Source of the DNA: Blastocladiella emersonii ATCC 22665
Lineage: Eukaryota > Fungi > Blastocladiomycota
NCBI GenBank assembly: GCA_025594325.1
Contig: JANHCV010000008.1
Span: forward strand, 868,001-932,000
Reading direction: 5' to 3'
Length of the DNA: 64,000 nucleotides
Shown here: positions 3 through 63,318 of the stretch, one piece after another
Layout: every line of letters starts with the position of its first letter
Position numbering within the stretch: the stretch's first letter is position 1
Notes under the pieces: generated by a model
Database searches by the model: none
What the model saw: the letters and a program-made list of their open reading frames with translations, nothing else
Told to the model about the DNA's origin: nothing
Program-made: the position numbers and the translations under genes

Positions 3-1637
3 CCGCTCGGTGGTCCCAGCTCTACCCACAATGCCCCGATTCCAAGCGCGGGCTCGCCGTCACCCGTGGCCGCTGGCCCTTCACCGCCCTTGCCGGCCAC
101 GGCTGCCGGGCGCCGCGTGCTTCACGAGCAGTCCTTGCTGAAGGTCATGGACCTGCGCATCCAAATGATCCGCTCGGCTCTTCGGCAACGGAAACCCACT
201 TTGCAGCGCGACAAGCGGGCGGAGCTCGAGCGGCAGGGTCTGCGCACCGCCAAGCTTATCGAGGAACTTGAACATCTTGTCAACCGGCTTGAACGCGCTG
301 ACGACTTTGACGGACTTTCAGCCCTTGGTGCACCTGCGACCGAGCGGTTCGCTAGCGACGTTCCTCCTTCGCCAATAACGTGCCCGTCAAGCGTTACACT
401 GCCAGAGCTGTTCCCAAATCGCATATCGCACTCCGAACCTCGAGATTCTCGAGATCCTCCAGATGCCCAAGATTTACGAGAGCCACGCGATCCTCGAGGG
501 CCTCGCGATCCTCGGCGTCGCCCTTCACGCGACAGCAGCCTCTCTCGCAGCCGACCACGATCACGATCCCGCTTACGGTCCCACTCGCGTGCTCGCGCGC
601 CTTCTCGTTCGCCCGAGCGCTTACCCCACCACCCGCGCAACGACCTGCCCGCGCGGCAGCTGACCATCGACGAGTTCCGCATCCTCTTCCACCACATGCG
701 CGACCATGGGCCACGCTTTCGCCAAGTCGAGACGTGTCCGCGCTCCTCGACCAACGACCCGCGCCAGTTCGTCGAATGGGCGCGGCGTGCCGCTTCCGCA
801 CCCGATTGCCAGCCGTGCCCCGTCACGCTCGCCCTCGCGCTGCTTGCTTCCAGCTCCAATGTGCCGTGGCGCGTCTATCACCTGTACTCGGTGTTCCTGC
901 GCACCGAGATGCCCGACGAGCGCGCCGAGCGCATCTTCCTCGACGCGGTCAACCCCGCCCACCCGCAGTACCGCGACTGGGCCGCGCGGTGGCTCAACAT
1001 CCCACGGATGCCCGGCACGCCCGTCTCGGCCTTCTACACGGCGTACCACGCGCTACTCGAAGAAGCCGCGCCGGGCCGCGCCGACGACCTCGAGGGCTCG
1101 TGGCCCATCAAGCTCGCCTTCGCCGAGCGCTTATTCAGCTTCGTCGACCCGAACCCGCAGCACCTGCACCCGATCATCTGGCACCATTCGGGCACCGTCG
1201 AGCACATGAACGAGGTCCTGCGCGGCGTCGTGTTCGCCGACAACGAGCTGACGCGCGGGTACGCGGATGTGCGGCGCGGCGGCGACGGGTGCTGGTTCTG
1301 CCGCCACTTCGTCGACCTGTGCCCGCCATCGGCTCGTACTCATCCGCGCACCGCGTGCCCGCTCATCATGCACCCGTACGCGCTGTCCGAGGCCATCGTC
1401 GCCGCGATGCGGGTGGCGGAAATCGACTGGCCGCAGCTGCAACGCGACGCGCGGCCCGACAAGGCGGCGCTCGCGCGGGTTCATTCGCGGCTCGCGATTC
1501 TTGCACCGCAGTTCCCCGCCGTCAAGCCAGGCAAAGCGGTGCTTGACGCGGTCGGCCAGATGGGCGACCAGCTGCGCGGGCGGCTGCTCAGTTTGGTGGT
1601 GCCCACCATTGACGAGCTGTGGAAGAAGAAAGCATAG
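3..1637 (+). CDS. Gag-derived family member 1 (frame open to the window edge, 5' incomplete)
   Basis: LLKVMDLRIQMIRSALRQR helix; RS linker; core DPRQF...NVPWRVYHLYSVFLR...ERAERIFLDAVNP...WAARWL...IKLAFAERL; knuckle CWFC-x13-H-x4-C; no intron. Confidence 0.85.
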   Translation, partial: PLGGPSSTHNAPIPSAGSPSPVAAGPSPPLPATAAGRRVLHEQSLLKVMDLRIQMIRSALRQRKPTLQRDKRAELERQGLRTAKLIEELEHLVNRLERADDFDGLSALGAPATERFASDVPPSPITCPSSVTLPELFPNRISHSEPRDSRDPPDAQDLREPRDPRGPRDPRRRPSRDSSLSRSRPRSRSRLRSHSRARAPSRSPERLPHHPRNDLPARQLTIDEFRILFHHMRDHGPRFRQVETCPRSSTNDPRQFVEWARRAASAPDCQPCPVTLALALLASSSNVPWRVYHLYSVFLRTEMPDERAERIFLDAVNPAHPQYRDWAARWLNIPRMPGTPVSAFYTAYHALLEEAAPGRADDLEGSWPIKLAFAERLFSFVDPNPQHLHPIIWHHSGTVEHMNEVLRGVVFADNELTRGYADVRRGGDGCWFCRHFVDLCPPSARTHPRTACPLIMHPYALSEAIVAAMRVAEIDWPQLQRDARPDKAALARVHSRLAILAPQFPAVKPGKAVLDAVGQMGDQLRGRLLSLVVPTIDELWKKKA

Positions 1638-2040
1638 TATAAATTGCTCATTCAACTCGGTTCGTTTGAATCGCAGCGAGTACAATTTTGAGCACACCAT
1701 CATCGCGTCCTGCGGACGAATCTTGGGCAGTCAGCGCAACCCGAAGAAGACGGACCCCCGCGATTCACTGAGAGTGTCCGGCGTGTGAGCAATGCACCAG
1801 CACGTGGTCGGCCGCGGTGACCCGCAGCGCTTCGAAGTGCGCGCAGTGGGTGCGTGGGCGCAACTGGAAGGGTTGGTGGCTCATTTGGGCGCCGAGAGAT
1901 ATCAGCGGATGGTGCAGTGGTCGCGGCTGTGGCCACCGGGTATTGAGAAGTAGAGCGAGATCGGCTTGGGGACAAGCGGATGACGGGAGTCGAGATTGAG
2001 CGGCCGCGAGCTGCCTGTGGCTGTTCTGGCAGAGACTTGT

Positions 2041-2940
2041 TCAAGGCAGGGAAGCACGGTCATCGGGAAAGCGCAACGAGCCGAGCCGATTCGCGATATC
2101 GAGCATCGAGTAGTGCCGGCTATCGACAAGCGCATTGAGGCAATCGCTGCGTGCCTCGGGAACGCTCGCAATCTTGTCCAGGAACAACCGTTTGACGTAC
2201 GTGGAACCAACGATTACCCGCGACCGCTGCGAGTTGCGGAACACGTCCAAGACGGCCAGTTTGAACCCATTGACCGTCGTACCGGGCGTCGGTGTCAGGC
2301 GCACCCACTGGTCGATCCACCGCGGCCGCGCGTTCACGTCGAGCGCGCCGAGGAATCGAGTGCTTGCCTCCGAGTCAATCATGGGGAGGAGAATCACGAC
2401 AGCGTACGCGAGGTAAGTGTCCGGGTGCACGTTGGTCTTGACGTAGAGAAGCGCGCGCGCGAGCTGGCCTGCGGGAATCACGGCGCCCATTCGTTTGAGA
2501 AATTCGCGCGGGCTACTCGTACTGTGGCGGCCGGGCGGGGCGGGGATACGGAGGTACGGCCCGCGCGTGCGGACTAGCTCTTCGACTGAGCTCGTGGAAG
2601 GAGTTTTCGGCGGCGTGGGGAGCGGCGACTGCGATGAGGTGATTCGGGAAGCAGCTGGCTGCGCCCGAGGTCGACCAGCAGGTGATTCGCAGCGCGGCGC
2701 TGGCGCACCCACGTCGCTAAAGCGGGCCGTTGTGGAAAGTGGTTGTGCATAATCGGCTGCGGCGAGCCGCCGCTGCAAAGCATCCAATACGCTTCGGAGG
2801 CGCGCTTCGAGCGACGAGCGAAGGGGCTCCTGCTGCAAGTCGCAGGACACTGCCGGTTTGGACTGCAGCAAGTGAGGCACAGCCGGCGCGGCCAGAGCCG
2901 GACCATCGATACATGAGTCGTTTGTATGCAGTGGTTTCAT
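2041..2940 (-). CDS. Gag-derived family member 2, antisense, no clear knuckle
   Basis: SLEARLRSVLDALQRR; SPREFLKRM...LARALL...VHPDTYLAYAVVI...DSEASTRFLGAL...PRWIDQWVRL...YVKRLFLDKI; stops before any CxxC. Confidence 0.75.
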   Translation of the reverse strand: MKPLHTNDSCIDGPALAAPAVPHLLQSKPAVSCDLQQEPLRSSLEARLRSVLDALQRRLAAADYAQPLSTTARFSDVGAPAPRCESPAGRPRAQPAASRITSSQSPLPTPPKTPSTSSVEELVRTRGPYLRIPAPPGRHSTSSPREFLKRMGAVIPAGQLARALLYVKTNVHPDTYLAYAVVILLPMIDSEASTRFLGALDVNARPRWIDQWVRLTPTPGTTVNGFKLAVLDVFRNSQRSRVIVGSTYVKRLFLDKIASVPEARSDCLNALVDSRHYSMLDIANRLGSLRFPDDRASLP

Positions 2941-3023
2941 AGCATCGGAGTGGTTCGTGTGGGATGCCTAGAGCGAGAACGGGCGCGCGCGGTTCGCTGA
3001 CGCAACCGGGTCGCTTCCGAGCA

Positions 3024-3418: not shown

Positions 3419-5035
3419 ATGAATCATTATGTAACTGGGCGCAATTCGCTCGTCGGGCCAGCCTCGAAACCCTGTGCCCGTGCGCCGGCGCTTGCTCAAC
3501 ATTTATCCCCGTCCACCGAACCGCTGCTGCCCTTGCCGGCAGTGGCCGTCGACCGCCGGATGCTTCAGGAAAAATTGCTGCTAGAGAAGATGGAGCTTCG
3601 CTTGCGGTCTATACACTCGGTCCTGCACGAGCGCATTTCGGGCGGGCGACGCAATGATTTTGTAGCTTCCACCTTTTCTAGCGTTTGCGGCCTTGCTTGC
3701 ACCGGCGAGCCTTCAAAGCCCCTTGATTGCTCGATTGCCGCGCATCCTGTCCTTATGGGGTCTTGTCCCGACCACGACAGCCGCCCTCACCGCGTTGACC
3801 CGTCGGCCGCCGCTCGTCCGCCTGGAGTCGAGAACGCGGCTCCGCTCGTAGTCGAGAACGTGGCTCCGCTCTGCGACCAATCTTTGTGCAGCGACGAGCC
3901 CGTAGCCCGTGGTCTTACGCGCACTCAATACCTCGAGCGCATATCGATAGACCAGCGGCAACCGTGCCCGTCCTCTCGATCGCAATCTCACGGAGAACTC
4001 CCTCAACTACCTAGCTCTCACTCCGAAGAGCTCTCATCGCACTTGAAGTGCGACGCTCCGGTCCAACGAATGTCCATGAAAGACTTCCGCGTCCTGTTCC
4101 GCCATATGCGCGACCACGGCCCGCTCCTCTGGCAGTTCGATACCTCGCGGCTAAGATCAACCGACGATCCACTCGATTTCATCGCGCGGCTTCGGCGGAT
4201 CGCGTTCGCTCGCGACTGCGCCCCGAGCCCAGTCTCGCTCGCGCTGGCGCTGCTCGCGTGCAGCTCGAACGTGCCGTGGCGCGTCTACCACCTGTACGCA
4301 GTCTTCCTCCACGAGGACACGCCTGACGACGAGGCCGAGCGCATTTTCTTGGACTCGATCGATCCCGCGGACCCTGCGCGTCGCGACTGGGCTGCGCGGT
4401 GGCTCATCGCCTCTCCGCCGGCGGGCTCGTTAGTCTCCGACTTTTACGCATACTTCCACGCGCTGCTCGACGAGGCCTCTTTGGGCCGCGCAGACGAGTT
4501 GGAGAAGACGTGGCCGATCAAACTAGTCTTTTCCGAGCGCGTGCTCCATCGCCTCAACACGAAATCCGCGGCCCTCACCAAGATTCTGTGGAACCAATCT
4601 GGCACCGTGGCGGGCATGAGTGCGGCGCTCAGCGACACCGTATTCCCCAAGGAGAAGCTCCGCCCAGATTTCGCGAATTGGCGACGAGGATGCTGGTTCT
4701 GCCACCGCTTCGCCAAACTGTGCCCGCCATCGGCTCGCGAGCATCCGGGCGACCTGTGCCCGCTTCTCATGCACCCGCGCCCGCTCGCCGAGGTGATTGT
4801 GGATGCTATGCGCCTGGTCGGGATCGATTGGCTCCAGTATAAGCGGGCCGCCAAGCGAGACGAGCTTGCCCTCGACCAGGTCCTCACTTGGCTCGAGGAA
4901 TTGACACGTTACACGCCTACGATTCAAGCGGCCAAGTCGGCTATCGCGGCACTGCTCCAGCTGGTGAAGCGGATTCAGGTCCGAATGCTGAGCATGGTGA
5001 TCCCGGTGCTCGACCGAGCGTGGATCGAGGAGTAA
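3419..5035 (+). CDS. Gag-derived family member 3 (intact; sister of member 1)
   Basis: LLLEKMELRLRSIHSVLHER; core nearly collinear with member 1; CWFC-x13-H-x4-C. Confidence 0.85.
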   Translation: MNHYVTGRNSLVGPASKPCARAPALAQHLSPSTEPLLPLPAVAVDRRMLQEKLLLEKMELRLRSIHSVLHERISGGRRNDFVASTFSSVCGLACTGEPSKPLDCSIAAHPVLMGSCPDHDSRPHRVDPSAAARPPGVENAAPLVVENVAPLCDQSLCSDEPVARGLTRTQYLERISIDQRQPCPSSRSQSHGELPQLPSSHSEELSSHLKCDAPVQRMSMKDFRVLFRHMRDHGPLLWQFDTSRLRSTDDPLDFIARLRRIAFARDCAPSPVSLALALLACSSNVPWRVYHLYAVFLHEDTPDDEAERIFLDSIDPADPARRDWAARWLIASPPAGSLVSDFYAYFHALLDEASLGRADELEKTWPIKLVFSERVLHRLNTKSAALTKILWNQSGTVAGMSAALSDTVFPKEKLRPDFANWRRGCWFCHRFAKLCPPSAREHPGDLCPLLMHPRPLAEVIVDAMRLVGIDWLQYKRAAKRDELALDQVLTWLEELTRYTPTIQAAKSAIAALLQLVKRIQVRMLSMVIPVLDRAWIEE

Positions 5036-10437: not shown

Positions 10438-10693
10438 TGGTGAAATTTGGTTTTGCGAGATCGGAAAGCGGTGAATAAACTTGAATAGCTTCTCATAACG
10501 TAAAAACAGGCAGCATATTGTTGCTGATTTTTGTAAGCTTAGGCACCGGGCGAAGCCTCACGTCGCTCATTTCCACGTGGCGGGCGCCACCGCCCTGTCT
10601 CAGGGGCACATCTCCCCGCGCGCGCCCCTGCTCCCTTGCGACCCCGACTGGTACATGTAGCACACGGAATTTTGAGCTTTGACTTTATGCAAC

Positions 10694-14270: not shown

Positions 14271-14496
14271 TGCCTCTTGTAACATGAAAACATATTTAAT
14301 AAACTCAAAACCCTGTATTAAACGCCTCTTCAATTTGCTTGCTCTCCGACTTGACGAGCTGAAACAGTGTGGCGATTTCCGCGCCGCTCATGCCTTCGAG
14401 ACCCGTACGCGGCAGCGTGGCGCAACGCGTTCCCACGAGTAGCCTCTGCCGCGCAACCGCCGCTCCCGGCTCCATGAACCTGTCTCGCCCGCTTCT

Positions 14497-14967
14497 ATGA
14501 ATACGCCGAGTGCTACTCCATGCAATCGATTTCTTGCTCTACCTCCGTGGGATTCCGGCCCCGACCTCGCGCATACCGTCGCAGCGCTCGATCGCGCCGT
14601 GGCGGCGGCCAGCCTCGAGACCGCGTCCGGCCGCGACCTTGCTGTTCTCGAGCAAGGCGCGCTATGCAAACTTGTCTCTTGCCGTCGCGACTTGCTTCTG
14701 GCTGCCTTGCGCGTGCGAGTGGAGCCTGGTGGGCCCGTTTCGGCGGAGCCCATTGTCGCGGCGTCGCTTGCGCTGTCCGAGGCCCAGCCAACGCACGCGT
14801 CGATCTCGAAGCTTACTGCTTCTGTGTCAATCATCAATGTTCCGCTCAGCCCAGCAGCGACACCCAAGCTATTGCTCGAGCAGGATCAATCGCTGCATTC
14901 CGTGAAGAGCACCGCGGGGGGAAGCACGGCGCTGGTGGTGTCGAGCCCACACGATTCCCGAGACAAA
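14497..14967 (+). pseudogene. Gag-derived member 6, 5' fragment (sister of 47118)
   Basis: MNTPSATPCNRFLAL...LETASGRDLAVLEQGALCKLVSCRRDLLLAALRVRV matches the 47118 N-terminus; similarity ends at a 24-bp repeat. Confidence 0.75.
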
Positions 14968-15090
14968 TGTATGATCCGGAAACGTGAGCTTTATTCGGGA
15001 GAATGATGGGGGACAAGATGGAGAGGAAACAAGAGGGAAAAGGAGGGTGAGGAGGCCGCACACACCTGTATGATCCGGAAACGTGAGCTT
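14968..15090 (+). repeat. 24-bp perfect direct repeat around a purine-rich spacer
   Basis: tgtatgatccggaaacgtgagctt at 14968-14991 and 15067-15090. Confidence 0.9.
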
Positions 15091-15434: not shown

Positions 15435-17423
15435 ATGAAGCTTGCTGCATTTGGACACGATCTTCATGCTTCCGCGGGCTCAACCACCAGCTCGGCCTCG
15501 AACAAAAATCGCTCACCCGACGAGCACGGGGACTTGGTTGACGCCGAGCCCGCCGCCTTGCTCAAGGCCATGAACTTACGAATGGAGATGATACGCCTCG
15601 CAGCTGCTTCACGTTCCTCGCCCGTTGCTGGGCACCCCGACTCGGATGGGCAATCGGGCCCGCTCTCGCGTTCTCGCCGCATGACTTCGCCTCCCCGGGT
15701 CCACCCAAGCCCGCACCTTTCGCCTGCGCTACGCGATCAAAGTCCTCCTTCGTGCGACCTCGCTGCCCGCGTGGACCGCGACGCGCCACACTTCCAGCGC
15801 ATGGGTTCAGACGAGCCTCTCGCGCGCGTCCGGCGAAGCCCGACGCTGTTTCTCGAGCGCCTGCGCGCAGTTGCGTCAGACGCACCGCTCGCCCAGATCC
15901 TCCTCGCGGCGCGGTCCCGCCTTCCACCCGACCTGTACACGGTCCTCGTTGCGCTTCTGCGCCCCACCTTGTCCGACACCGAGGCCGAGCACGCGTTCCA
16001 CTGCGCTGCGCTTCCTAACTGGAATTACCGGTGGGTCCGCAGGTGGCTCGCGTTCGGGCCGCGGATGCGCAGCACGATTGGCGCATTTTACGAAGAGTTT
16101 TGCACGCTGCTTGGCTGCGTAACGCAGGTCACGCGCACGGTTGAGCGCGAGTTCCACGTCAAGGAATTGTTTTTGCAGCGGATCGAAAGTCACCTTGCTT
16201 GGAATCCTGAGTCTGTGCGCCGGATTGTGCTTGACCCGAACGGGTCGCTGGGCGATATCGCCGTTGAGTACAACCGGATCCTGCACGCCGAGCGGACGGG
16301 GTTGACGGCAGTCAGCCTGCGCGCAGAGTCCAAGACCCGAACTCGAGCCCCTCTACCTGCACCGCGAAACCGTTCGCGTTCACGATCCCACTCGCACTCA
16401 AGATCTCGCCCACATCAGGGTTTGCGCACGCGTACTCGGTCTCGCTCGCGATCACTTTCGCGAAACCGTTCGCGTTCACCGACCCGCTCGCGCTCGAGGT
16501 CTCGCTCGCGAACAGTTTCACGGACGCCGCCTACGCCGCGAAACCGTTCGCGTTCACGATCCCACTCACACTCCAGATCTCGCCCACATCAGGGTTCGCG
16601 CACGCGCGCCTGGTCTCTCTCGCGATTACTTCCCCGAAACCGTTCGCGTTCACCGACCCGCTCTCGCTCGAGGTCTCGCTCGCGAACAGTTTCACGGACG
16701 CCGCCTACGCCGCGAAACCTTTCGCGTTCACGATCCCACTCGCACTCAAGATCTCGCTCGCATCGGGGTTTGCGCACGCGTACTCGGTCTCGCTCGCGAT
16801 CACATTCGCGAAACCGTTCGCGTTCACGGACCCGTTCGCGCTCGAGGGCTCGCTCGCGTCAGGTTTTGCGCACGCGCGCCCGGCCGCGCTCGCGGTCAAT
16901 CTCTAGAACACCTTCACGCACACCGGCTAGATTGCGCCCAAGAGCGCGATCAATCTCGCGCGCACGCGCCCGGTCGCGGTCACGCTCCCGCTCTCCTGTC
17001 CGCTGCGAGCCCCGATCCTGTCGGCTGTGCATTGACCTGAACATGAAACTCCTGCCGCGGGGCACCACCAGCCAGCTCCGCTCGCTCGGTGCGCACCCGA
17101 CCAACCACCCGACCACATCGTGCCCGCTTCTGGACCGCCCGTACATTCTTGCTCGGCAGTTTGTTTCGGCGGCGCGCTTGCTTGGGTTTGGCGATCCCGT
17201 ACCGCCTCCGCCGGACGCGGACGCGGAACTGCTAGACAAGGTGACGTGCGAGTGGATGTGGAAGCTCCGCAGGGCGCCGATCCCGCCCCGGACGGCGCTG
17301 GGCGACGCGCTGGAGCTCACGTGGTGCCGCAGCATGGTCGGTGTCCTCTTCACGGTCCAGCAGCCGCGGCGGGCGCAGGTCCTGCGTGATCTATGGGGCG
17401 AGGTCGCGAGGCGTGTCAAGTAG
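15435..17423 (+). CDS. Gag-derived member 7 (intact, long RS tract)
   Basis: LLKAMNLRMEMIR; core; about 200-aa RS region; CRLC-x25-H-x4-C; tail WCRSMV. Confidence 0.85.
   Translation: MKLAAFGHDLHASAGSTTSSASNKNRSPDEHGDLVDAEPAALLKAMNLRMEMIRLAAASRSSPVAGHPDSDGQSGPLSRSRRMTSPPRVHPSPHLSPALRDQSPPSCDLAARVDRDAPHFQRMGSDEPLARVRRSPTLFLERLRAVASDAPLAQILLAARSRLPPDLYTVLVALLRPTLSDTEAEHAFHCAALPNWNYRWVRRWLAFGPRMRSTIGAFYEEFCTLLGCVTQVTRTVEREFHVKELFLQRIESHLAWNPESVRRIVLDPNGSLGDIAVEYNRILHAERTGLTAVSLRAESKTRTRAPLPAPRNRSRSRSHSHSRSRPHQGLRTRTRSRSRSLSRNRSRSPTRSRSRSRSRTVSRTPPTPRNRSRSRSHSHSRSRPHQGSRTRAWSLSRLLPRNRSRSPTRSRSRSRSRTVSRTPPTPRNLSRSRSHSHSRSRSHRGLRTRTRSRSRSHSRNRSRSRTRSRSRARSRQVLRTRARPRSRSISRTPSRTPARLRPRARSISRARARSRSRSRSPVRCEPRSCRLCIDLNMKLLPRGTTSQLRSLGAHPTNHPTTSCPLLDRPYILARQFVSAARLLGFGDPVPPPPDADAELLDKVTCEWMWKLRRAPIPPRTALGDALELTWCRSMVGVLFTVQQPRRAQVLRDLWGEVARRVK
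16363..16880 (+). repeat. Three 174-bp (58-codon) RS-coding units
   Basis: Unit start cgcgaaacc at 16363, 16537 and 16711; frame preserved. Confidence 0.85.
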
Positions 17424-21500: not shown

Positions 21501-21588
21501 TCACATGACGCGTCGCGAGGCGGCGCTCCCTTCTCCTCTTCAACACCGTCACCTCCCATGTAACTGCGCATGAACACTCAATGCAACT
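21501..21588 (+). promoter_or_regulatory. Example family 5' module (E-box plus ATGYAACT)
   Basis: tcacatga 21501-08, atgtaact 21558-65, atgcaact 21581-88; similar modules occur at most members. Confidence 0.55.
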
Positions 21589-47117: not shown

Positions 47118-48614
47118 ATGAATACGCCGAGTGGCACTCCATGCAACCTATTTCTCGCTCTATCCCCAACGGATTTCGACCGCGACCTGGCGTCTGCCGT
47201 GGCGGCGTTCGATCGTGCCGCGGTCGCGGATGAACTTGAGACCGCATCCAGCAGGGAGCTTGCCGTTCTCGAGCAGGGAGCGCTTTGCAACATCCTTTCT
47301 TGCCGTCTTGACTTGCTTCGGGCTGCGTTGCGCGCGCGCGTCACACCTGAAGCCGTTTTGGCGGAGCCAATCGTTGGAGCGTCCCATGCCTTGTTCAACA
47401 CCCAATCGACATGGACGGCGATCGCCAAGCTTATTGTTACCAAACCGACTATCGAATTTTGTACGGATCTGACTGTATCCGCCCTCCCTGTGGTGGAATC
47501 ACTCGTGCAGGGACCGGCTCTGCTTTCAGCTGCGGCCGAGCCGCTCGCGACCGAACTCGAACTCTCCGCATCATCGTCCGAGCTGGATTATCACGAACCG
47601 GTCTTGGCCACCACGGTGTCGGTGTACTCGGCAGCTCCCAATCCAACGCAACCGGCAACTGCACCAGACCTTACGTCCCGCCCCGAGGCAAAACCCAAAC
47701 TGGCGCTTGCGCTGAATCACACCCTGCTTTCCGCGTGCGCGACCCTCGGACCGTACATTCGCGCCATCGAGCTCGGCCACGAAACGGACGACTTCGACTA
47801 CGACGCGATTTGCCGTGCTGCCGAGTCCATGGTTGAGCTTCTCTCAATCGGAGTCGAGCCAGGCCGCCTCGCGCACGCGTTGATCGACTCGCACGACCGC
47901 GTCCCGTCCAGCATCTACCGCGCCTACGCGATCGTGCTTTTGCCCGAGATGCCCGACGACGCAGCGCGTGCTGCCGTGCTATCCGTGTTCGGTTCACTGA
48001 GGCCGGCGTGGGTCGCGAACTGGATCAGGTATGCCGTGAAACCGAAACCGGACCGGCAGTTCAAGCTCCAGGGACTGTCGCATTTTGCGCTGCGGATTCT
48101 GGTCAACTCGGATTCGGGGTTCGCGACCCGCTCTGCATGCGTGCACATCAAGTCCCTTTTCATCGACCGCTTTGCTTGGGTTGATCAGTCAGCGCTCGCC
48201 CAGCGGATTAACGATCCGGAGTGCAAGCTCAAGGAGCTGTTCAAGGCTGCGTTTGGCTTGTACGAACGGACCGCTGCTCCCTTTGACCAGCAACCGAAGT
48301 CGCCCCTTGCTGTTTCCGCTGGCCCTTCTGTTGCCGCCGACCGTGTGCCGCTTACCTCCAAGCCTGTCATCAAAACACCGCCAAGGAAGCTATTGACGCG
48401 AAAGTCGATCCAGATGCCGCTTGCGCGTGATGAGCCGCACGTGGAGCAACCCGTCTCGATTTTAGCTCGCGGACTGCTGCTTCCTTCGATTGTCGCAAGG
48501 ACGTGGCCCACCCAGCTTTGGGCCATTCTGCTTCCGCGGGCCGCCCGCCGCCCAAAATCCTTGAACTGGGTGAGATCGAATGCTCAACCCTTGCCGCTCA
48601 GACAATTGATGTGA
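47118..48614 (+). CDS. Gag-derived member 15 (core, no knuckle; overlaps member 16)
   Basis: MNTPSGTPCN; LCNILSCRLDLLRAALRAR; GVEPGRLAHAL...PAWVANWIRY...HIKSLFIDRF. Confidence 0.75.
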   Translation: MNTPSGTPCNLFLALSPTDFDRDLASAVAAFDRAAVADELETASSRELAVLEQGALCNILSCRLDLLRAALRARVTPEAVLAEPIVGASHALFNTQSTWTAIAKLIVTKPTIEFCTDLTVSALPVVESLVQGPALLSAAAEPLATELELSASSSELDYHEPVLATTVSVYSAAPNPTQPATAPDLTSRPEAKPKLALALNHTLLSACATLGPYIRAIELGHETDDFDYDAICRAAESMVELLSIGVEPGRLAHALIDSHDRVPSSIYRAYAIVLLPEMPDDAARAAVLSVFGSLRPAWVANWIRYAVKPKPDRQFKLQGLSHFALRILVNSDSGFATRSACVHIKSLFIDRFAWVDQSALAQRINDPECKLKELFKAAFGLYERTAAPFDQQPKSPLAVSAGPSVAADRVPLTSKPVIKTPPRKLLTRKSIQMPLARDEPHVEQPVSILARGLLLPSIVARTWPTQLWAILLPRAARRPKSLNWVRSNAQPLPLRQLM

Positions 48615-49203
48615 TTGGTGCTTCGGCCGCTCGCTCTGCCCGGCCATCCGATCCGCGCCCTTTATCGCCACGGCTTCCTTCGCGACCTCCCGCTTTGCAC
48701 CACCCCGACTCTCTAGTGGTTTGCCATCGCGGCGCGGAGTTTGACGTGGATCTCGGCCACGCACTCCGCGACTGTGGCCCTGCCCTCCGGCTAACACAAA
48801 CCATGCACCGCGACTACACGTTCCAATCAGGTGCCGAGTTCATGGACGCGCTCCAGCGCTTTGCGCCCAATTTTGGTCTCGCGAGCCTTCTCCTCACCGC
48901 TTCCCGGTGCGTGCCGCGGCCGCTTTACCATGTCTACTCGCTGTTCATGCGCGAGGGCATGCCGGACGACTTGGCGCGAGAGCTGTTCTTCAACGCCCTC
49001 GACCCGGCTTGGAAGCGCGACTGGGTCCGCTAGTGGATCGCGCTCACGCCGCAACCTGGAGAGTCTGTGTGGTGCTTCTACGGCACGTTCCGCGCGGTGC
49101 TGTCCGAGGATGCCGTCGTTGACCGCGACCCCGCACTGCGCCAGCTCAAGCTCGTCTTTACCGACAAACTGTACGCGGGGCTCCGGAACGTGCCGGGCCC
49201 CGT
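48503..49203 (+). pseudogene. Gag-derived member 16, 5' part (second core), split at 49203
   Basis: AEFMDALQRFAPNFGLASLLL...VPRPLYHVYSLFMR...WKRDWVR*WI...QLKLVFTDKLYAGLRNVPGPV; continues in frame at 60068. Confidence 0.8.
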
Positions 49204-49799
49204 CATCGTGAAACGCCATTTTGGCGCTGGAACCAGGCTAGCCGATTGGAGCTCGCAGGAGACCCGATTGGACCTGCAACCTGACCCGACTGGGCCTGGC
49301 TATACCCGACCGCGCCTGAGGTGACCCGATTCCTCATGGAAATAAATTAAATGAGGTCAGCCCCGGACTCGAAGACTTAGACACGTAAATCGATGAGCTC
49401 AAATTCTACCTCAAGAATTAAATGATGGATTCGCGGCCCGAAACGCTCGATCAAGGAAGAAAGTGCTCCCTGAAAGGGAGCGCTATCTGAGGAGAGACGG
49501 TGCAATAATGAGGAGAAGCGAACGAGCTCGAGATATATACAGGTACGCCAGCGCAAGAATTCTGAAATCCTAGCGAACTGCAGCCGCGGAACAGAATGAA
49601 CGCGTGCGAGTCTGCTTCGTGTAGTGCGGGCCGAGTATCAGGTTGAGGACGGCGACGATTGAGCTGTTGTTGATGATTGCGCGGCCGCGCGCGGGGTTGG
49701 AGTTGACTCGCCCATCCGCGTGCGCACGATGACGCCCGTCTCGCTGCAGCGGCGGTCAACCACGAGCGTGTCGGATCACGGCGAACTCGCGCGCGCGAC

Positions 49800-53823: not shown

Positions 53824-56371
53824 TCAGCGCAGGATCGAGTTGAAGGCCGTGTCAGACTCCTGGAAGAACTGCTCGCGGCCGATGAACCAATTAAGGTGGT
53901 AGTACGGCTTCTTCTTGGGCTTCCCGTTGACGAGGTGCTTGAGGAACGTCGGCACGAGATGGACAGGGCCGACGATGGCGGGAACGGGTACGACGGCAAG
54001 GGCGTCCTCGCGGCGCACCTGGATCAGGTGAGTGATGGCGTCGCGGGCGAGCATGGTGTTGCTGTTGGGCTTGAACCGCGAGAACCAGCGACCGACGGCG
54101 ACCTGGAAGCGGTCGTCAAAGCCCTTGATGGCAAAGTCGAGGAAGAGGATGGGCTCCATGATGTTGAGCCCGCCCTGGTTGCCGCGCCAAGCCTGGGTTT
54201 GTCGCCAGGGGGAGGCGATCAGTAACGAGTGGTGTAAAGCGGCAGGAAGATAACAAGGCGAGGTTAAACGTACCACAAAAAAGTCGTTGACGAGGCGACC
54301 ATGGGACTCGGTGACGCGGGCCTTGAGGATCTCGACGATCGGCTGGCGGTCGAGGTCGCTCGTGCGATGGATCTCCATGCACTGGAACCCGCGGACCTGC
54401 GACACGCGGCCGGCGGCATCGGTAAGGTCCTTGGGACGAAGCGCAGCGTTGGCGTCGCGGTTGCTGGGTGGCAGAAAAGGACAGGGAGCGAACAGGAGAG
54501 TGGCGTCAGTGCATGACTTCGAGAGAGGGCAGTGATGCGGGAGTACGTACTCGATGCCGAGCAGGACGTGCTTGGCCATGGCCTTGGTGAGGCCGCGCAG
54601 GAGGTTTGGGAACTTGTTCTCGAGCCAGTCGAGCGTGACGCCGCGGCGGGACCCGCGCAGCAGCGAGGGAACGACACTGAGCGTGATGCGGCGCTCCTCG
54701 TACTGCAACTCGACGCAGCTGACGGCGGGCTGTGGTTCAGCAGCAGCGTCAGTAGCGGCCGTCGGCGCGCCAGCGCCTGCAGTCGTCGCGCCGTTGCCCA
54801 CAGCGCCTGTGGCCGCCGACATGGCATTGACCTCGGCAATGAGCTCCGGGCTGCCGTAGAGGCGAGCGTAGACGCGGCCCTCGTCCGTGGCAATGTCGAT
54901 GTCCATGTTGTCGACACACCGGATGGTGCCTGCAGCGGCGGGCGCGGGGGCAGCAGTGGCGGCAGCAAAGGTCGTTGTGGGTGCTCGGGTGGGCGCGGGG
55001 GCAGCGGTGGCGGCGGCAAAGGTCGTTGCGGGTGCTTGGGCGGCGGGCGCAGGGGCAAAGGTCGTTGCGGGTGCTGGGGCGGCGGGCGCAGGGGCAAAGG
55101 TCGTCGCGGGCGTGGAGGCACAAGCGGCGGCCACTCGAGCCCGCGCGCCGTCCAGTGCCCGGTCGAGGGGCGCGAGCGTCGGGTCGACCTTGTCGAGCGA
55201 GATGAGGTCGGGGTGGTAGACGCGCATGTAGGAGAACTGCGCGATCAGGGCGTCGCGTGCAGCAATGTTGAGCGACGCCAAAATCTTGAGCGACTGCTGG
55301 CTGTTGGTGCGCTTCGTTGGTGCTGTCGCGTACACCTTGTGCTGGAGCTCGATTGTGGTCTCGGTGCTGGACGCCGCCGGCGCGCCGAAACGGCGTGCCG
55401 AGCCCGGGATGTGGTTCATCATATGAAACACGAGGGCGTCGGGGAGGTCGACACCGGCGTCCTCAAAGAACAGCACGAGGTGCTCGAAGAAGACGTCGAG
55501 GTACCGTCCAATCAGCTCCAGCGCCGAGTTGGTGAGGGTCGGCGAGGACGCGAGCGTGGCCACGGTCGCGAAGCTGCTGAACAGGTGCAGGACGCGGTCG
55601 TTGAGCTCCTTCTCGCGAAACAGGCCGATCAGGTGCGGCACAATCACCTACAGGCAAAGCGACGCAAACACGATGAGTAAGCATTGGAAGGGAGCCAGCC
55701 AGCAGCGAGTCTACCCAAGCACGGAGAAACACACGTACGCGGTAAAGGCACCGCCACTCGTGCCCGGCGAGCTTGTCACGCGTCATGATGGCGCCGGCGC
55801 GCAGCGGGTTGCTCGAGAAGGCGGGCGTCATGCTGATGCGCTGCTCGAGGCTCGGCGGGTGCGTCACGCGCTTCTTGACAATGGCCTTGAGCGCCGACCA
55901 CAGGTAGCGGCCAAACGCGCCGATATCGAGCTGGTGCAGCAGGTCGACAGCGAGACACTTGAAGATGTTGACGCTGGGCCACTCCTTGAAGCCGCTCTAC
56001 ACGTCGTTCGTGTGGGGGCAAAATGGTCGGTGAGTGAGACATGGGCGGCGCCAAAGCGCAGTGGGCATGGAGAGAGCCAGCGCACCTTGAGCAGGTGGTA
56101 CCCGAGAGTTTTGGCCAGCGCCTTGAGCTGGGCCTTGCTCAGGCCCATGACGGCGGGTCGACGCGCTTGGCGCGGATCTCCTCGATGTTGTAGGACCCGA
56201 AGATGAGCATGCGTTTGAGAAACTGCGCGACCTCGGTCGGGCAATGCGGGCAGACGATGCCCTGCTTGGTGAGCGTCATGATTGAGAGCTCAGGGAGGTC
56301 GCCGAGCACCTGCAGCAGCCGCATGAACGTCTTGTAGACGTCACCGGGTGCGACTCGCATCGGACGCCCGC
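53824..56371 (-). CDS. Plavaka-like transposase, spliced, N-terminal part apparently missing
   Basis: GDLPELSIMTLTKQGIVCPHC (compare ADYPEQ...CPxC); AVDLLHQLDIGAFGRYLW (compare PD.LHQ...G.F...L..W); VFHMMNHIPGSARRFG. Exon boundaries not fully resolved. Confidence 0.65.
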
Positions 56372-56768
56372 TACACATGCGCGAGTACAAGGGCAAAGTC
56401 AGTGAGGGTGGGCGGCCCAGCGTTGGCGTGCGCGCGCGCGGGAGAGATTGCGGCGCAGCGGCGAGGCAGCGACGCGCCGAGCACATGATTGGCGCGTTGG
56501 CGCGTTGGCGCGTTTGCGCGTTCGGCGGCGTGCTGCACAGCCTGCTGCACAGCGGCGGCGAAGAGGCAGGCAAAGAGGGGGCGCCCCCTCGCCCCGCCCC
56601 GCCCGCTCCCGCTCCCGCTCTCCCTCCCCTCTCTTGACTTTGCGCCTGCTCGGCCTCGGTCGCTTCTGCTCCCGCAAGACACCCGCCGCCCTCGACCTGC
56701 TGGCATCCGACCCACCCGCCCTCCACCGCCACCGTCACCGCCATCTCGCGTCCCGAGCGTCGCCCGTC

Positions 56769-59365
56769 ATGGCGTCGCACCAACCCGCGCCCAGCCCGTT
56801 GTCTGGCTCGGCGCCCGCCAAGCCGCCACTCAACATGACGGCGGACGAGATCCAGATGATCATGCAGTTCCGGCAGCAGCGGTCCATGCCGCAGTATCAG
56901 CAGCAGCAGCATCATCATCCTCATCATCATCAGCAGCAGCAGCACCAGCAGCAGTTCCCGTTCCCGCCGCCGGACCCAACCTCGTTTGCGCAGGCTGCCC
57001 CTCTCCCCATCGTGTCTCTTCCCGCCGCCACCGCGCGTACCCCCGCCACGGACCGGTTGATGACGTTCGCCCCTGCTCCCGACCCCTCCTTGCCCTTTTT
57101 CCTCAGCTCCACCACTCGCGCGCCGCCCGCCTGCTCGCCTGCTGCCGCCGCCGCTGTTGCTGCCTCTCCGGCGGTGGCAGCAACGGCCCCACAGCCCAAC
57201 GACGGCAGCAAGCCTCCGCGCAAGTGGCGGCGCCGCTTGAAGCACAACCCATTTGCCTGCGGGCCCGTCTTGCCCGCCGCTCCTCCCTCCTCTGCGCCCT
57301 TGACTGTTCCGCCATCTGCGCCCGTCGCTAGTCTCGCCCCTCTCGCCCCGCTCACCCCTCTCGCCCCGCTCACCCCTTTCACACCATCATTGGCGCCCGC
57401 AGTCGCACCCACCAACGGGTGGGCACAGCTTCGATTGCGTACAATTGATGGCACCATGATCGCCAAGGTCTACTCGGCCTTCGTCACGCCGTACATGACC
57501 CGCTTCGACCTGTCGGATCTTGAGAACGAGTGGCCAAGCGCCCATGTACGGTCCACGGCCAACCGCGAGTTGCGCCGGGTGCACTGACTCTGCTGCCTGC
57601 CTGTGTATAGCTTGAGTTCGCCAACCTGAAGGACGAGTTCGCCTGTGCTCGCTCCAACCTCTTCACGCTGGTCCTCAAGTTCATCAGGCAGAAGCTGGTC
57701 AACAACGCCTCGATCGCCTCGGGGACCTGGGACACGGCGCACGCCGCCTTCAAGGCCGGCAACATGGGCGTCCTCAAGCCTGCGTGGACCAACAACGTGC
57801 TCTTTGACGCGGCCGGCAACCCAAACACGATCCTTGAGGTGCTGCTCGACAGCGTCCTCCTGTTGTCCGTGAACTGTACGTTGCGTGCGTCTGCCCATCC
57901 CTCGACACAACTTGTACCCCTCATTCGCCCCTCCCCTCCCCCTCCAACCTTGCCCTCATAGCGAATGTATCCTTTGGATCCATCGCTGTGCTGGTGCTGC
58001 AGGAACTGGACGGGGCCGTGCTCAAGGTCAACCGCGCCCAATGCTTCCTCGCTCTACTTCTCGCTGTGATACGTTGCGCCTCCGCCGTCACCGCCGCTTT
58101 CTTTCTGCGGCCTGCTCACCCCCGCGCGCGCGCGCTGCCTAGCTGGGCTCGGCCCTGTCGCCCGCGAAGGGGTGGGGTGACTTCCGCAACCAGTCGGACC
58201 GGCAATCCAACCTCACCAAGCTCCGCAAGGTCGTGGCGGAACCCAACTTTACCAAGAAGGTGACCGGCTTCTCGGTGCTGTTCCGCGAGACGTGTGCCCA
58301 ACGTGGGTACAGTACGGGCTTTGCGTGGTTCACTGCCCCGCCGCCGAGCACTGCCACGCCCGCGTCCGGCCTTGCCATCGCCGGGGCACCAGCAGCGGCC
58401 TCGGCCTCGTCATCGGTACCCGCCGGCGCCATGCCCTTCTCCAACTCGGGCTACGCGGTCGAGATGCCGTTGGGCAACACGTCATCAATGCTCATCAACC
58501 CCGGCAACCCGGCGTCGCCTCTTCACCTCGCTGCCCACAACGGCCTCGACCCCGGTATCTTCGAGCTGCTTGCGCGCAGCGGCAACGGTAGCGGCTCGGC
58601 CTCGCTCACCATGTCGGCCTTGACCTCGGCCGCAGTCCCGCTTGCCACCAGCGCGCCCTCGCTCGTGCCTGTCGAGACTACGACCGCGCCCTTCCCCTCG
58701 TCCCCGCTCCCTCGTGCCGACGCTGACGCCAACAACGATGACAAGGGCGACGAGAGCGACGCCAGTCCCCTTCGTCGTCCACGTTCGCTGACCCCGCCAC
58801 CACCTCGGCCACCACCACCTCCGCCACTGCAGCAGCGGCCTTGTCGTATGCTCCCTTCCCTTCGCTGCTGTCTCCGCGTCCGGGTGACCAACGCTGACGC
58901 TCATGCCATCGCCCCCACCTCCCAGCCCATCGCTCCGCTGCTGCAGGTGTTGGTGCCAGTGCGACACCGACCAGCGGGTCCGTGGTCGAGCCCCAAGTCG
59001 GCGCAGCACACGGGCTCACCTCGCCGGCCGCGGCCATCGATGCTGCGGCTGCTGCTCAAGATCCAGCGGGCGTGGTCGACGGCGAGACTGAGGCCAAGCT
59101 GCGCCAGTCGGCGGCGTCCGAGGGTGGCGTCATTGAGGACAACGAGCGCGCCAAGGACAACGAGTCGGCGTGGACCGATGCCCAAGTCACGCAGGAGACG
59201 GACCCGACCAACAACGTCGAGAACGCGCCACCCGCGCCTCCCACAACGCCTGCGACCTGGGCCAAGTCGACGCGCGTGCGCAAGCCCAGCGCCAAGCGCG
59301 CGGCGACGCTCGCGGCGTTCGCCATCTCGGTGCCTCGCAGAACGAAGACCAAGGCCAAGAAGTAG
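56769..59365 (+). CDS. Second, divergently transcribed spliced gene of the element (unknown function)
   Basis: MASHQPAP; poly-Q/H tract; WAQLRLRTIDG...; intron-separated blocks LEFANLKDEF... and VVAEPNFTKKVTGF; basic tail RKPSAKR...KTKAKK. Confidence 0.6.
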
Positions 59366-60065
59366 GCCAAGGGCGCGCGCGCGCGCACGCGCTGTTGCAC
59401 CGTGGGGGGGGGGGGGGGGCGGGCGAGCGGGCAGGCCGGCCGGCCGGCCGCCCAAGCGTGTTCCGATATGATGATATTGTATATATATATACCCGAATGC
59501 TGCGGATGACTCCCCGACTGGGTCAGGATCTGAGCGCGATATGGCCTGGATCCGGCGACGATACGGCCAGGATCTGAGCGTGACATGGCCCGGATCCGGC
59601 GACGATACGGCCAGGATCTGACTGCGACGTGTGCCCGGATCCGGCCACGATGCGAGCGGGATAGTGACACGATCGGTGCGCACTTCGCGGCGGCATCACG
59701 GCAGCCTCTGTCCCGGACCTGGGCGAGATCAGGGCAGGATCACGGCACGATCAGGGCCGGATCTGGGCCGGATACCGCCCCAACGCTGCCCAGACGCTGC
59801 CCCGACCCCGCTCGCGCCGCCCGCGCGGCGTCTGAGCCAGATCCGGTCCGCGTCAGGATAATATCACAGATCCGGCCCAGATGCTGCTTTCTGGCCGCGA
59901 TCCGGCCGCGATCGGGCCCCGAACCGCTGCTGCAGGTTTTGCGATGGACTTTTCGCAAGGTCACTATTGAACCTGCCCGTCCCGACTTGGATCAAGTTCC
60001 CAATTGGGCGGCAGTGGTCCAGCCACCTCAACCACCCCATTCGGGTCAGCCAGAAATGTACGATG

Positions 60066-60659
60066 GTGCAGTCTCTCATCTTCGACCCATGCATTACTCT
60101 CGAGTCATTGGCTGCCTCGTTTGCCGGCGGCGCCGCCCCGCTCCAATCGCCCTCCCCACCTGCGAAAAGAAACGCGAAGGAGTGCGCGTTTTGCAAGAGG
60201 GTGGTGTGGCTTCGCAAAGCGTTCACATCACACTTGACGGACGCATGTCGGCACATCAGCACCATCCGTCTGCACGCGCGCGTTGTCGCGGACGCGGTCA
60301 AGAGTGCTGCGCTTACGATCCCGAAATTATCGGGCTCCCCGCACACCCAAGCCGAGCCGCTCACGGCGCTCATGTTGCAGCAGCTGCGTGAAGCGCCGCT
60401 CCCAGACGGCGCGCTGGATTGGGCCGGTTCCACCATCTCCAAAGCGTGCAGTCTGCTCTTTGCACTGATCTCGCTCGCGTACGAGCTTGGAAACGGTGCA
60501 ATGCGGGACCTGTGGAAGCTCGTCGAGTTGATTAGCGGGACGAGTAGCTGTTTTGATTCCCGAAAGGGGCCCAAAAAGAACGTTGATGTTTTTTTTGATG
60601 TGGTTCCAAAGTGTTGCAATTCCGACATTAGTAAGCTGAGGCGGCCCGCTGACTGCTAG
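60066..60659 (+). pseudogene. Gag-derived member 16, 3' part
   Basis: VQSLIFDPCITLESLAASF...CAFC-x12-H-x4-C...MRDLWKLVE. Confidence 0.85.
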
Positions 60660-60840
60660 TACAGCACACAACCCAGTTGCGCACGAGACTAGAGATGTGC
60701 CGAGCGGTCGCGTTGCGCCACACACGTGAGCGATGGGGGCAGTTTTCCCGAAGCGGCCAACGGTTCGGCTCGCGGCTTGCGCGTCACATCTCACGCTGCT
60801 CCCTACTCGTGTGCGCGTCTGACCGCACGCATGTCACTTT

Positions 60841-61863
60841 ATGCAACTTAGAATGCGAGCTCAATGCAATCTGCCGGTCGAACGTTCCTCATCCTTGGGC
60901 CACGGCCAGAACCTGCCCCTTGTCGCGCCGCGCGACCTCGCAGCGATGCCGCCGCCACAGGACCAGTCGCTTGAGGCGCAAATCCTCAACTCGATGAATC
61001 TTCGCTTGCACCAGGTCCATTCGGTGCTTCACCATCGTATTGCATGCTTCGCTGAAACCCACACTGAGTGGAACGTGCGTCGCGGCGATTCTGATCCGCC
61101 ACTCTGCCACCTAGCAGATCTCTATCCAGCCGATGGGGCACGCCGGCTTCTACTCTCGTACAGCCCGGCACCCTTGTCGACTCTTGCACTGGCCGAATGT
61201 CCCGCACCTCGTTTGCCACCTGCTGGCTCGAGCGGACCCAGCTCCCGCGACGACGCGTACGAGCTGATTGACACATCCGGTCATTCTCTCTTCTACCAAG
61301 TCTCTGCCCGCGTACCCAGCCTTCGCACCACCGGTCAGCAGCGCGTTCCAGTCGTTTCAGACCCGCGCGACTTCCTCGCCGCCCTGCGTGGGGTCGCGCC
61401 GCACGAATCGCTCTCGCGCCTTCTCATTGCGGCACGGACCAAGGTGACGTGGATGCAGTTCTGCACCTATGCCGTTTTCCTGCGCAAGTCGACGCCCGAC
61501 CGCGAGGCCGAGCACCTCTTCATTAGCGTTGTCGAAAACACGTGGCGGCCCGCTTGGACGGCACGCTGGAGCAAGCTTCGGCTCAGATCGCGCTCAGCCA
61601 AGGACATGGATCGGTTCTACAAGGCGTTCTGCGCGCTAGTTGGCGAAGCGGTCGGGCTCACGCACGAAATGATGCACGAGGAGCACGTGAAGCGCGTGTT
61701 CAATATCACCGTGTCCCGGTCCGTGGGATAGAGCCCCATTACCGTCCAGAACCTCATTCCGGACCCGAGGGCGACGCTTCTCGACGTCTGCAACGATTAC
61801 ATTTGGCTTGCCAAGCCCGGACCAAGTACAACCAAGCATGCTCGAATGCGGCTGTTGAGATGA
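60841..61863 (+). pseudogene. Gag-derived member 17; TAG at the conserved Trp (sister of member 12)
   Basis: ILNSMNLRLHQVHSVLHHR; core; SVG*SPITVQNLIPDPRATLLDV continues in frame to a stop at 61863. Confidence 0.8.
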
Positions 61864-62088
61864 GCGGGCTTGTGTGTGCGACTGTTGCTTCAATACACCA
61901 CGTTTGCTCGTCTGTTGTGCGCGTGGATCAGAGAGCCTGGCCTGCCTGGGTGCCGGCTTCGGCGGCCACGCGCCGTCCACCTCCCTGCGACCTCACGTGA
62001 GGAGGCGCGCAAGCCGAACTCACGACGGCGCGTCAGGCCGACCTGACCCCACTCTCCCCTCGGACCGTGCCCCCTGGCAGCTATACCA

Positions 62089-63318
62089 ATGAAGACTCCA
62101 TGCAACTTGAATGAAAATCGGTTACCGACACACGGTGACCTTGTCCGCGTTCCGGGCCTCCCACTTGCCGCGGCCGCCGAGCGAGACGCTGGGTGCTGCG
62201 AGGACCAGCAAAAGAGACTTTTGCGCGTCATGGAGCTGCGTCTTCAGGTTATAAGAACCACTCTTGCTATTAGACTTGATCGATCTCCCGCTCCGTCACA
62301 TTCGGCGACCGCTGCCGCCGCTGAAATCGGATCACTATTGTCTCAGCTCGCGAGTTTGACGGAGCCGCAACAGATTGTTGCTCGTTCCTTCAACGAGCCC
62401 GCTCCTGTCCTGGCTCCCGCCGGCTCGGACACGCCTCGTCTCGACCCGGCGCATGGTCATTGCAAACCCGAGCCCGAGTTTGGAGCAGCTCGTTCTCAAG
62501 GCCCAGCTCATACAGGTCCGACCACGACTTACTCAACAGGGACCTTGAACTCGCCCAGCAGCCGTACCTCCCTTTGTTCCTTCGACGACCACCTTCGCTT
62601 CAGACTCAAGGAGTCTGGCCCCAACGTGCCGCTCACGGTCTTGCTGGCGCATGCTTACCCAAACGTCCACCGTGCCCTGTATCGCAGGTATGCTGTCTTC
62701 TTGCGCATGACAGCAACCGACGACGAGGCGAAACAAATCTTCCTCGACGCTCTCAAGCCAATTGACGATCAGCTGTCGTGGATTAACCGCTGGCTCCGCA
62801 TGAAGCCCCGGCCGAGCACTACCGTCGCCAAAGTCTTCTCGACCTATATCCTTGTCCTCCGCGAGCAGATTGTGACTGACGCCATCTTTCAAAGGTTGTG
62901 GCACATGAAAAAGCTCTTTGCCGACAAGTTGTTCATGTCGCTCGGGTACATCCCGAAGACGTCGCTGGAGATGATCGCCGCGCCTGATTTGACTTTGTCT
63001 GAGATGGCCGCCGCACTTGGCAACGTTGTGTTCCCGGCGGTTCACTTGTCCGCACCGATGCGAGGCAGCGATGCGGTAACCCGCGGCGGCGACAGTATCG
63101 CCTGCATGTACTGCCGGCAGCTTTGCCAAGCAGTTAATATTGTCCGCTCTCACTCCACGCGCGAGTGCCAGGCACTACAGGACACTTGCTCCGTCGCCAC
63201 TGCAATCGTGAGCGCCGCGCGAAACATGGCCGTTCCAAGCCCTCCGCATTGCGCGGCCGCTTCGCTGAACCATGTCTTCCTCGCTACTGCGAAACAATGG
63301 GTCGTCGACGTGACCCGA
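62089..63318 (+). pseudogene. Gag-derived member 18, tail interrupted by a transposon
   Basis: MKTPCN; LLRVMELRLQVIR; core; CMYC-x12-H-x4-C; the TIR starts at 63319 inside the tail. Confidence 0.85.

Follow-up and report, generated by a model that had tools for sequence, protein, structure and literature searches.

The question raised by this locus is whether a long row of related Gag-like reading frames in the fungus Blastocladiella emersonii ATCC 22665 is a family of host genes or the remains of retroelements. The stretch analysed, called here the window, comprises 64,000 nucleotides of contig 8 (JANHCV010000008.1:868001-932000); it is gapless and has 62% G+C, and positions given below are counted from its first letter. 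The contig is 1.80 Mb long and makes up about 5% of the 34.27-Mb PacBio HiFi assembly (PMC9730499). On balance we favour the explanation that these genes form a family derived from the Gag of a chromovirus, without pol and without long terminal repeats (LTRs), which was duplicated in place, evolves by birth and death and is used in conflict. The narrower statement, that this is a Gag-derived family bound to its locus and maintained by selection, is very probably correct.

The array and the protein it encodes

A family profile was built from 11 long open reading frames (ORFs) and run against all six-frame stop-to-stop segments of the window. The family was found at 19 places, together with one duplicated tail fragment, between positions 1 and 63525, and the complete copies were matched with E values of 1e-105 to 1e-155. 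A previous sequence-only reading of the window had described about 18 paralogs, eight of them complete. The tandem family is real and the eight full-length ORFs listed at that time are all open, with lengths of 458-662 amino acid residues, but the count is now 19 places and the tail fragment, and the copy at 62089-63525 has to be added as a ninth complete one. The nine copies with all modules in one frame start at positions 3, 3419, 15435, 17880, 19688, 21570, 42749, 45480 and 62089. One further copy (46956) is open and has lost three zinc ligands, two carry a single frameshift apiece, another seven are fragmentary or degenerate, and one is N-terminally short, split by a transposon and carries at least one frameshift. 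The plus strand carries 18 of the 20 copies (binomial two-sided P ~4e-4). The long plus-strand ORFs of the window are 22-52% identical to one another, and the spacers between copies in tight runs range in size from 99 to 1800 bp. The copies are as follows.

1-1637, plus strand: complete copy in one frame, profile positions 18-489; the start is 34 nt upstream of the window edge
2044-2967, minus strand: partial inverted copy from N-helix to core; knuckle and tail gone (one truncation)
3419-5035, plus strand: complete copy, 538 residues
10676-12192, plus strand: near-complete copy with one frameshift, in two frames; long ORF of 437 residues
12710-14270, plus strand: copy with one frameshift, in two frames
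14443-15003, plus strand: N-terminal fragment; DNA 76% identical to the start of the 46956 copy
15435-17423, plus strand: complete copy, 662 residues; Arg/Ser-rich linker grown by a 174-nt tandem repeat
17880-19448, plus strand: complete copy, 522 residues
19688-21199, plus strand: complete copy, 503 residues; additional Cys-rich N-terminus
21570-23399, plus strand: complete copy, 609 residues; Arg/Ser-rich tract ahead of the core
24316-37645, plus strand: broken copy; N-terminal part gone, LTR-element insertion, at least one frameshift
40148-42394, plus strand: degenerate copy; core and tail pieces, N-terminus gone, internal loss
42749-44302, plus strand: complete copy, 517 residues, the modelled copy; N-helices 25-93, core 168-362, zinc motif 389-414, tail 415-516
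45480-46856, plus strand: complete copy, 458 residues from ATG; Cys-rich N-terminus
46956-48614, plus strand: open copy, 552 residues; three of four zinc ligands lost, tail degenerate
48434-49321, plus strand: core-only fragment; both ends gone, one in-frame stop
59743-59991, minus strand: tail fragment in the left arm of an inverted repeat; duplicates the 3' terminus of the 62089 copy
59862-60656, plus strand: C-terminal fragment (knuckle and tail)
60823-61728, plus strand: truncated copy from N-helix to core
62089-63525, plus strand: complete copy, 478 residues; last 207 nt within the inverted repeat's right arm

The array continues past the window, with one copy to the left and at least eight copies 16-34 kb to the right, and this cluster begins at about 860.7 kb on contig 8 and reaches at least as far as 966 kb.

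Alignment and AlphaFold models divide the protein into five modules: an N-terminal helical hairpin, a disordered linker, a helical core, a Cys2-His-Cys motif and a helical tail. The hairpin corresponds to residues 25-93 in the model of the 42749 protein. The linker is highly variable in length and frequently rich in Arg and Ser. The core of about 190 residues is modelled as 12 helices, with a predicted local distance difference test score (pLDDT) of 92.5 and a predicted template modelling score (pTM) of 0.85, and the helical tail is modelled with pLDDT >90. The zinc motif has the form C-X2-C-X(11-25)-H-X4-C in 26 of 28 near-full-length copies, compared with the canonical C-X2-C-X4-H-X4-C, and the four zinc-ligand columns are kept in 26-27 of the 28. 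No Pfam match to zf-CCHC was found in ten paralogs. The sequence-only reading had seen an N-terminal helix, a core, a CCHC knuckle and a tail retained throughout. These modules are indeed common to the paralogs, but the spacing of the knuckle is not canonical.

Some variable features of the proteins and of the array were also observed. Tracts of Arg/Ser dipeptides (16362-16898 and 22084-22183; ORFs 66, 15435, 17880 and 21570) occur either ahead of the core or in the stretch that joins it to the zinc motif, their position differing among the paralogs. The 174-nt tandem repeat of the 15435 copy (2.9 units, 90% matches) is a recent enlargement of such a tract. Two paralogs of one subfamily (19688-19760 and 45441-45560) have an extra N-terminal cluster of Cys residues followed by His, which may represent a second metal site. 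At the right end of the window lies a 682-nt inverted repeat with arms at 59266-59946 and 63319-64000, which are 99.85-100% identical and reach the window end. It encloses two family copies, and each arm contains the last 207 nt of a paralog and 22/44-nt tandem repeats; a third copy of the arm, 93% identical, is found at 42215-42496. Possible origins of the inverted repeat are a recent duplication in inverted orientation, an element of the foldback type and an artefact of assembly.

Relationship to chromovirus Gag

The window also contains a full-length Ty3/Gypsy element, whose polyprotein provides a Gag region with which the family can be compared. Its parts are the following.

24850-36941, minus strand: full-length Ty3/Gypsy LTR retrotransposon, inserted within one paralog
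25838-31072, minus strand: uninterrupted ORF of 1744 residues for a polyprotein of Gag, protease, reverse transcriptase, RNase H and integrase; residues 115-541 match the family profile
31226-36809, no strand assigned: 5.6-kb insertion nested in one of the two Gypsy LTRs; its terminal inverted repeats (TIRs) are 25 bp long and perfect, and a TA duplication is present

The profile of 11 ORFs matches the Gag-position region of this polyprotein with 27 bits. A hidden Markov model (HMM) of 28 family members matches residues 115-541 with 32.8 bits (E 6.5e-9, 3011 targets). The match is colinear and includes the core, the zinc motif with an equally enlarged loop and the beginning of the tail. Comparison of the family alignment with the same Gag by hhalign gives a probability of 78%, and the identity in the aligned core is about 16%.

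The relationship extends to elements outside this genome. The pol of the window Gypsy element is 35-45% identical to that of chromoviruses from metagenomes and from Mucoromycota, and Retrotrans_gag is present in many of these. The family HMM matches two such chromovirus polyproteins, and in one of them (P0131) the match at residues 148-305 falls on the place of Pfam Retrotrans_gag at 145-214. The alignment of 28 family members was then compared by hhalign with the N-terminal 420 residues of 23 chromovirus polyproteins with PF03732, mostly metagenomic and from Mucoromycota. This gives a probability of 94% (E 1.5e-7, 282 columns), and the confident stretches are the Retrotrans_gag region and the zinc motif. 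The score of 64.6 can be compared with 19.0 for the reversed template and 13.7-20.6 for 22 block shuffles. On the strength of these controlled profile matches, both to the window Gypsy Gag and to the chromovirus Gags, we accept that, by profile comparison, the family descends from the Gag of a chromovirus-type Ty3/Gypsy element. The Gag origin proposed in the sequence-only reading is thus upheld by profile-profile homology with controls.

That reading had also stated that the array contains no pol and no LTR pairs. This holds for each paralog and for the spacers; however, the span as a whole includes the complete Ty3/Gypsy element with its LTR pair. The LTRs are 196 bp long, have TG..CA ends and are 97-98% identical; one of them is interrupted, and the flanking 5-mers differ at one base. 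No chromodomain was detected in the element, though most of its pol relatives carry one. Exact look-up shows that the ORF and the element are missing from public protein sets. Pfam gave no gag family for the Gag region of the element up to E 10, and a word-index protein search with this region and with one paralog gave no match.

In the nested TIR element no transposase domain was found. It contains a block of 70% G+C composed of 48-, 81-, 93- and 144-nt tandem repeats, which encodes a Pro/His-rich ORF of 490 residues on the minus strand; the public annotation has a gene of 957 residues there.

Mode of duplication and selection

No direct repeats or LTRs were found around any paralog, and no solo LTRs between copies. 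The spacers resemble neither the local 196-bp LTR nor, patches of 22-28 bp apart, one another, and beyond the ORF ends the copies are no longer similar in DNA. Other arrays were located by looking up annotated relatives, so that the description of them covers the sampled places. Seven such places on contig 8, at about 196, 565, 704, 861, 958, 1165 and 1290 kb, carry same-strand arrays, and these contribute about 45 more copies between 186 and 1302 kb. Two divergent copies are on contig 6. At least 60 family copies were sampled in all, and 23 of the 25 annotated relatives are on contig 8. The other arrays, covered over about 150 kb, contain no pol, and nothing in about 150 kb of other loci corresponds to the window's non-family gaps. 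When 1.84 billion representatives were searched with the profile, 25 proteins of B. emersonii were returned, and the one additional match, a repeat protein, was spurious; there were no relatives in other species, the unannotated genomes of relatives being outside this search.

The closest pair among the 28 near-full-length copies has 72% protein identity, with a synonymous divergence (dS) of 0.55 and a ratio of nonsynonymous to synonymous divergence (dN/dS) of 0.36. As no two of these copies are more alike than this, no young copies are seen. The dN/dS values, which are pairwise Nei-Gojobori estimates and are all <1, differ by module: 0.23-0.37 for the core, 0.21-0.5 for the knuckle and tail, and 0.4-0.6 for the helix and linkers. 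On these estimates the core and the zinc site have been under purifying selection. A dN/dS near 1 among the paralogs, together with a lack of expression, had been named as a result that would speak against a functional family; the values found are 0.2-0.5, and the frames are open at dS >0.5. The position of the Gypsy element inside one paralog means that this paralog predates the insertion.

The absence of pol and LTRs, the arrays, the confinement to one contig, the lack of young copies, the dN/dS values and the paralog predating the Gypsy element lead us to regard the family as duplicated in place and held by selection. Its amplification took place by tandem and segmental DNA duplication in place and not by retrotransposition. 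The suggestion of a host family, as opposed to scattered copies bounded by LTRs and target site duplications, agrees with the dN/dS values, the retained frames, the same-strand arrays and the one-contig confinement.

The regions upstream of the genes have one common feature. A GTGACGCG/TCACGTG-type (ACGT-core) motif is found upstream of seven of 13 copies with an N-terminus, where about two are expected (P ~0.0015, the motif having been chosen post hoc). Its distance from the start is 60-135 bp in the copies that begin at 15435, 17880, 19688, 21570, 45480, 60841 and 62089, and sites are also present at 42643-42664 and 10561-10582. Sister copies keep patches of 22-28 bp around the ACGT core about 100 bp upstream, followed by a CT-rich tract, and the remaining spacer sequence cannot be aligned. 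In an unbiased test, k-mers upstream of the starts were no more enriched than in shuffles, and only the post hoc test of the GTGACGCG-type motif exceeded them. The motif may be a shared promoter element and is treated here as a lead.

Other genes and mobile DNA were observed around the copies. A Plavaka (KDZ-type) transposase gene is at 53824-56360 on the minus strand, with PF18759 on the annotated product of 719 residues, and a second, weak Plavaka-like ORF adjoins it at 56139-57245, also on the minus strand; the region forms a transposon-rich gap in the array. Another gap contains an ORF of 405 residues (38321-39538, plus strand) with a weak FNIP-repeat match (E 8e-5), leucine-rich repeat character and a G+C content at third codon positions (GC3) of 0.63. 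Genes for PIF1-like/Herpes_ori_bp-like helicases lie beside three other arrays (L002 20736-21826, L007 20328-20942 and L003 3927-6917) and may belong to Helitron-type elements. The FNIP and PIF1-like neighbours suggested that the family might be cargo of a giant virus or a Helitron. This was rejected, because the copies are too old and diverged and the arrays are without hallmark genes. No tRNA genes and no Rfam families were found.

Possible function and comparison with known Gag-derived genes

The history begins with the Gag gene of a chromovirus-type Ty3/Gypsy element, which lost pol and LTRs and then grew in number through tandem and segmental duplications on a single chromosome of B. emersonii. 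Birth and death followed, about half of the copies being kept open by purifying selection while the rest decay. This much we take as shown. The anatomy, with its hairpin, capsid-homologous core, zinc site and tail, suggests that the proteins may still, like Gag, self-associate and bind nucleic acid. The paralogs could then act as decoy or poison Gag, or sequester the RNA of retroelements or viruses. Such a conflict role is preferred because the paralogs are old and diverged, dN/dS is moderately high, pseudogenes are frequent and the neighbourhood is rich in transposons. That the family is a conflict repertoire against retroelements or viruses, working through decoy or poison subunits or RNA sequestration, is put forward tentatively, as one possible use.

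Several observations weigh against this explanation. Lattice poisoning needs close relatives, and in the core the family has about 16% identity to the one full-length element seen; no element closer to the family was found among 120 pol relatives. The GC3 of the paralogs is 0.64-0.77, compared with about 0.91 in nearby host genes and 0.87 in the Gypsy element, which suggests weak or conditional expression. No Pfam family matches ten paralogs, with no gag family up to E 1, and a sequence profile search of the PDB gave no match to the family. The Ty3/Arc capsid fold that the sequence-only reading had expected was not recovered by Foldseek despite the confident core model. Against the PDB, neither the full model nor the core model with pLDDT 92.5 gave anything below E 0.9, and against BFVD the full model gave nothing at E <=0.001 and weak matches to retroviral Gag and caulimovirus coat proteins at E 0.07-0.4. 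Foldseek is insensitive to small helical domains, and these searches do not support a capsid fold. The public gene models, hypothetical proteins with a 99-100% match to the window, are cut short at internal methionines, are spliced or combine two neighbouring paralogs: one fuses 18501-18800 with 20822-21124, which belong to two adjacent paralogs, and others are at 43346-44302 and 45948-46853. The nine full-length ORFs are absent from a collection of 15 billion proteins. Finally, synteny cannot be applied as a criterion of co-option, since no orthologs are known in other species.

It is necessary to compare the favoured explanation with the possibility that the copies are functionless relics, either of a gag-only non-autonomous element or of an LTR-gag tandem array produced by unequal recombination. 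The open frames would then reflect past selection while the element was mobile, or selfish maintenance. The Gag ancestry of the family would be expected in this case, and about half of the copies are broken, the codon bias is low relative to host genes and the surroundings are rich in transposons (Gypsy, the TIR element, Plavaka and PIF1-like helicases). In addition, neutral spacers would be unalignable at such an age, so that the missing LTR similarity is not decisive for old copies. However, the 99-240-bp spacers leave scant room for LTRs, and the same-strand bias and the confinement to one contig oppose insertion by retrotransposition. Frames of 450-660 codons persist at dS 0.55-1 and more with dN/dS 0.2-0.4, and the copies diverged after they had been duplicated in place; near-identical young copies are missing and the short upstream patches are conserved. 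We consider functionless relics to be unlikely. Another doubt concerns Gag itself. Capture of the domain of a host helical zinc protein by the local Gypsy element, or a convergent likeness, would account for the lack of a Pfam gag match in both the family and the Gag region of the window element, for the Foldseek result and for the non-canonical spacing of the zinc motif. It would not account for a colinear profile match, in the Retrotrans_gag region and the zinc motif, to 23 independent PF03732 chromovirus Gags with controls far lower, and it is very unlikely.

A different use of a Gag-type protein has also to be considered, namely a cellular role of assembly or RNA binding outside defence, such as stage-specific packaging of mRNA in the zoospore, similar to Arc and PEG10, or a function as Arg/Ser-rich regulators. 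The hairpin, the capsid-homologous core, the zinc site and the basic Arg/Ser tracts are retained under constraint, as such a role would require, and the common ACGT-core motif upstream suggests co-regulation. However, dozens of paralogs at 20-50% identity, with many pseudogenes and no orthologs elsewhere, are unusual for housekeeping or development, and the known cellular co-options of Gag are one or few conserved genes, the three fungal ones being single copy (PMC8321522). This role appears rather unlikely, and we retain the explanation of a family kept by selection and used in conflict.

The domestication of Gag is well documented in animals. The mammalian PNMA, RTL/SIRH and SCAN-domain families and Drosophila dArc1/dArc2 are derived from Ty3/Gypsy Gag, duplicated and partly in tandem. 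The B. emersonii family arose independently of these; it has far more copies per cluster, and adjacent copies are far more diverged from one another. Some of the animal families have a documented capsid formation and function, and no member of the present family has. Compared with the Gag of chromovirus Ty3/Gypsy elements (PF03732 and zf-CCHC), the family has the same order of a helical N-terminus, a capsid-homologous core and a Cys2-His-Cys motif. However, it is without protease, reverse transcriptase, RNase H, integrase and LTRs, and it has no Pfam match at threshold. Its zinc loop is 11-25 residues long and not 4, it has a conserved helical tail and variable Arg/Ser linkers, and it is arrayed and not dispersed.

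Restriction by endogenised Gag offers another comparison. Mouse Fv1 and yeast Ty1 p22/p18 and Drt2 share with the family an open frame under selection, and they are a plausible model for the poisoning of capsid lattices by a Gag without pol. They are, however, single genes that are close relatives of their targets, in contrast to the low core identity between the family and the sole full-length element seen. Homotypic lattice poisoning in yeast is highly specific and depends on near-identical partners, and Drt2 does not cross-restrict a subfamily with 79% identical Gag (PMC13709905).

In fungi, three gag co-options, Crtg12-14, have been described; they are single copy, derived from Ty1/Copia or Bel-Pao, and syntenic across families (Wang and Han 2021, PMC8321522). 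They have in common with the present family that gag alone remains, that LTRs are missing and that purifying selection acts on them in a fungal genome. The differences are that this family is derived from Ty3/Gypsy, has at least 60 copies among those sampled, is found in one species only and belongs to Blastocladiomycota. Of the features by which those authors recognise co-option, the family shows a Gag-derived ORF without pol under purifying selection, and it does not show syntenic orthologs. A screen for fungal co-options left out Blastocladiomycota and relied on Pfam domains (PMC10799480); such a screen would miss the family, because Pfam domains do not detect it. Similarly, the family is invisible to proteome-based surveys because the public gene models are wrong in form. 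The genome paper makes no mention of transposons, gag or the family (PMC9730499), and literature searches on retrotransposons or Gag in Blastocladiella or Blastocladiomycota gave nothing on the family. The family is therefore undescribed. It is set apart from known Gag-derived host genes by its scale, its tandem layout, its confinement to one chromosome and its altered zinc motif.

This would be the first large Gag-derived gene family in a fungus, and it is one that the public annotation of the model fungus B. emersonii misses in full-length form. If the explanation is true, dozens of Gag descendants kept by selection over about 1.1 Mb of one chromosome represent an extreme case of capsid reuse and a natural data set on how a capsid protein diversifies once it is free of an element. 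A further step, which we consider doubtful, would be that more than 60 co-regulated Gag-derived proteins constitute an array for innate immunity or genome defence, or self-assembling carriers of RNA in the zoospore. The logic of a defence array would be similar to that of the KZFP, TRIM and NLR clusters, but the array would be built from capsid. Whether as a defence array or as RNA carriers, an early-diverging fungus would, if this is true, have domesticated capsid independently and on an unusually large scale.

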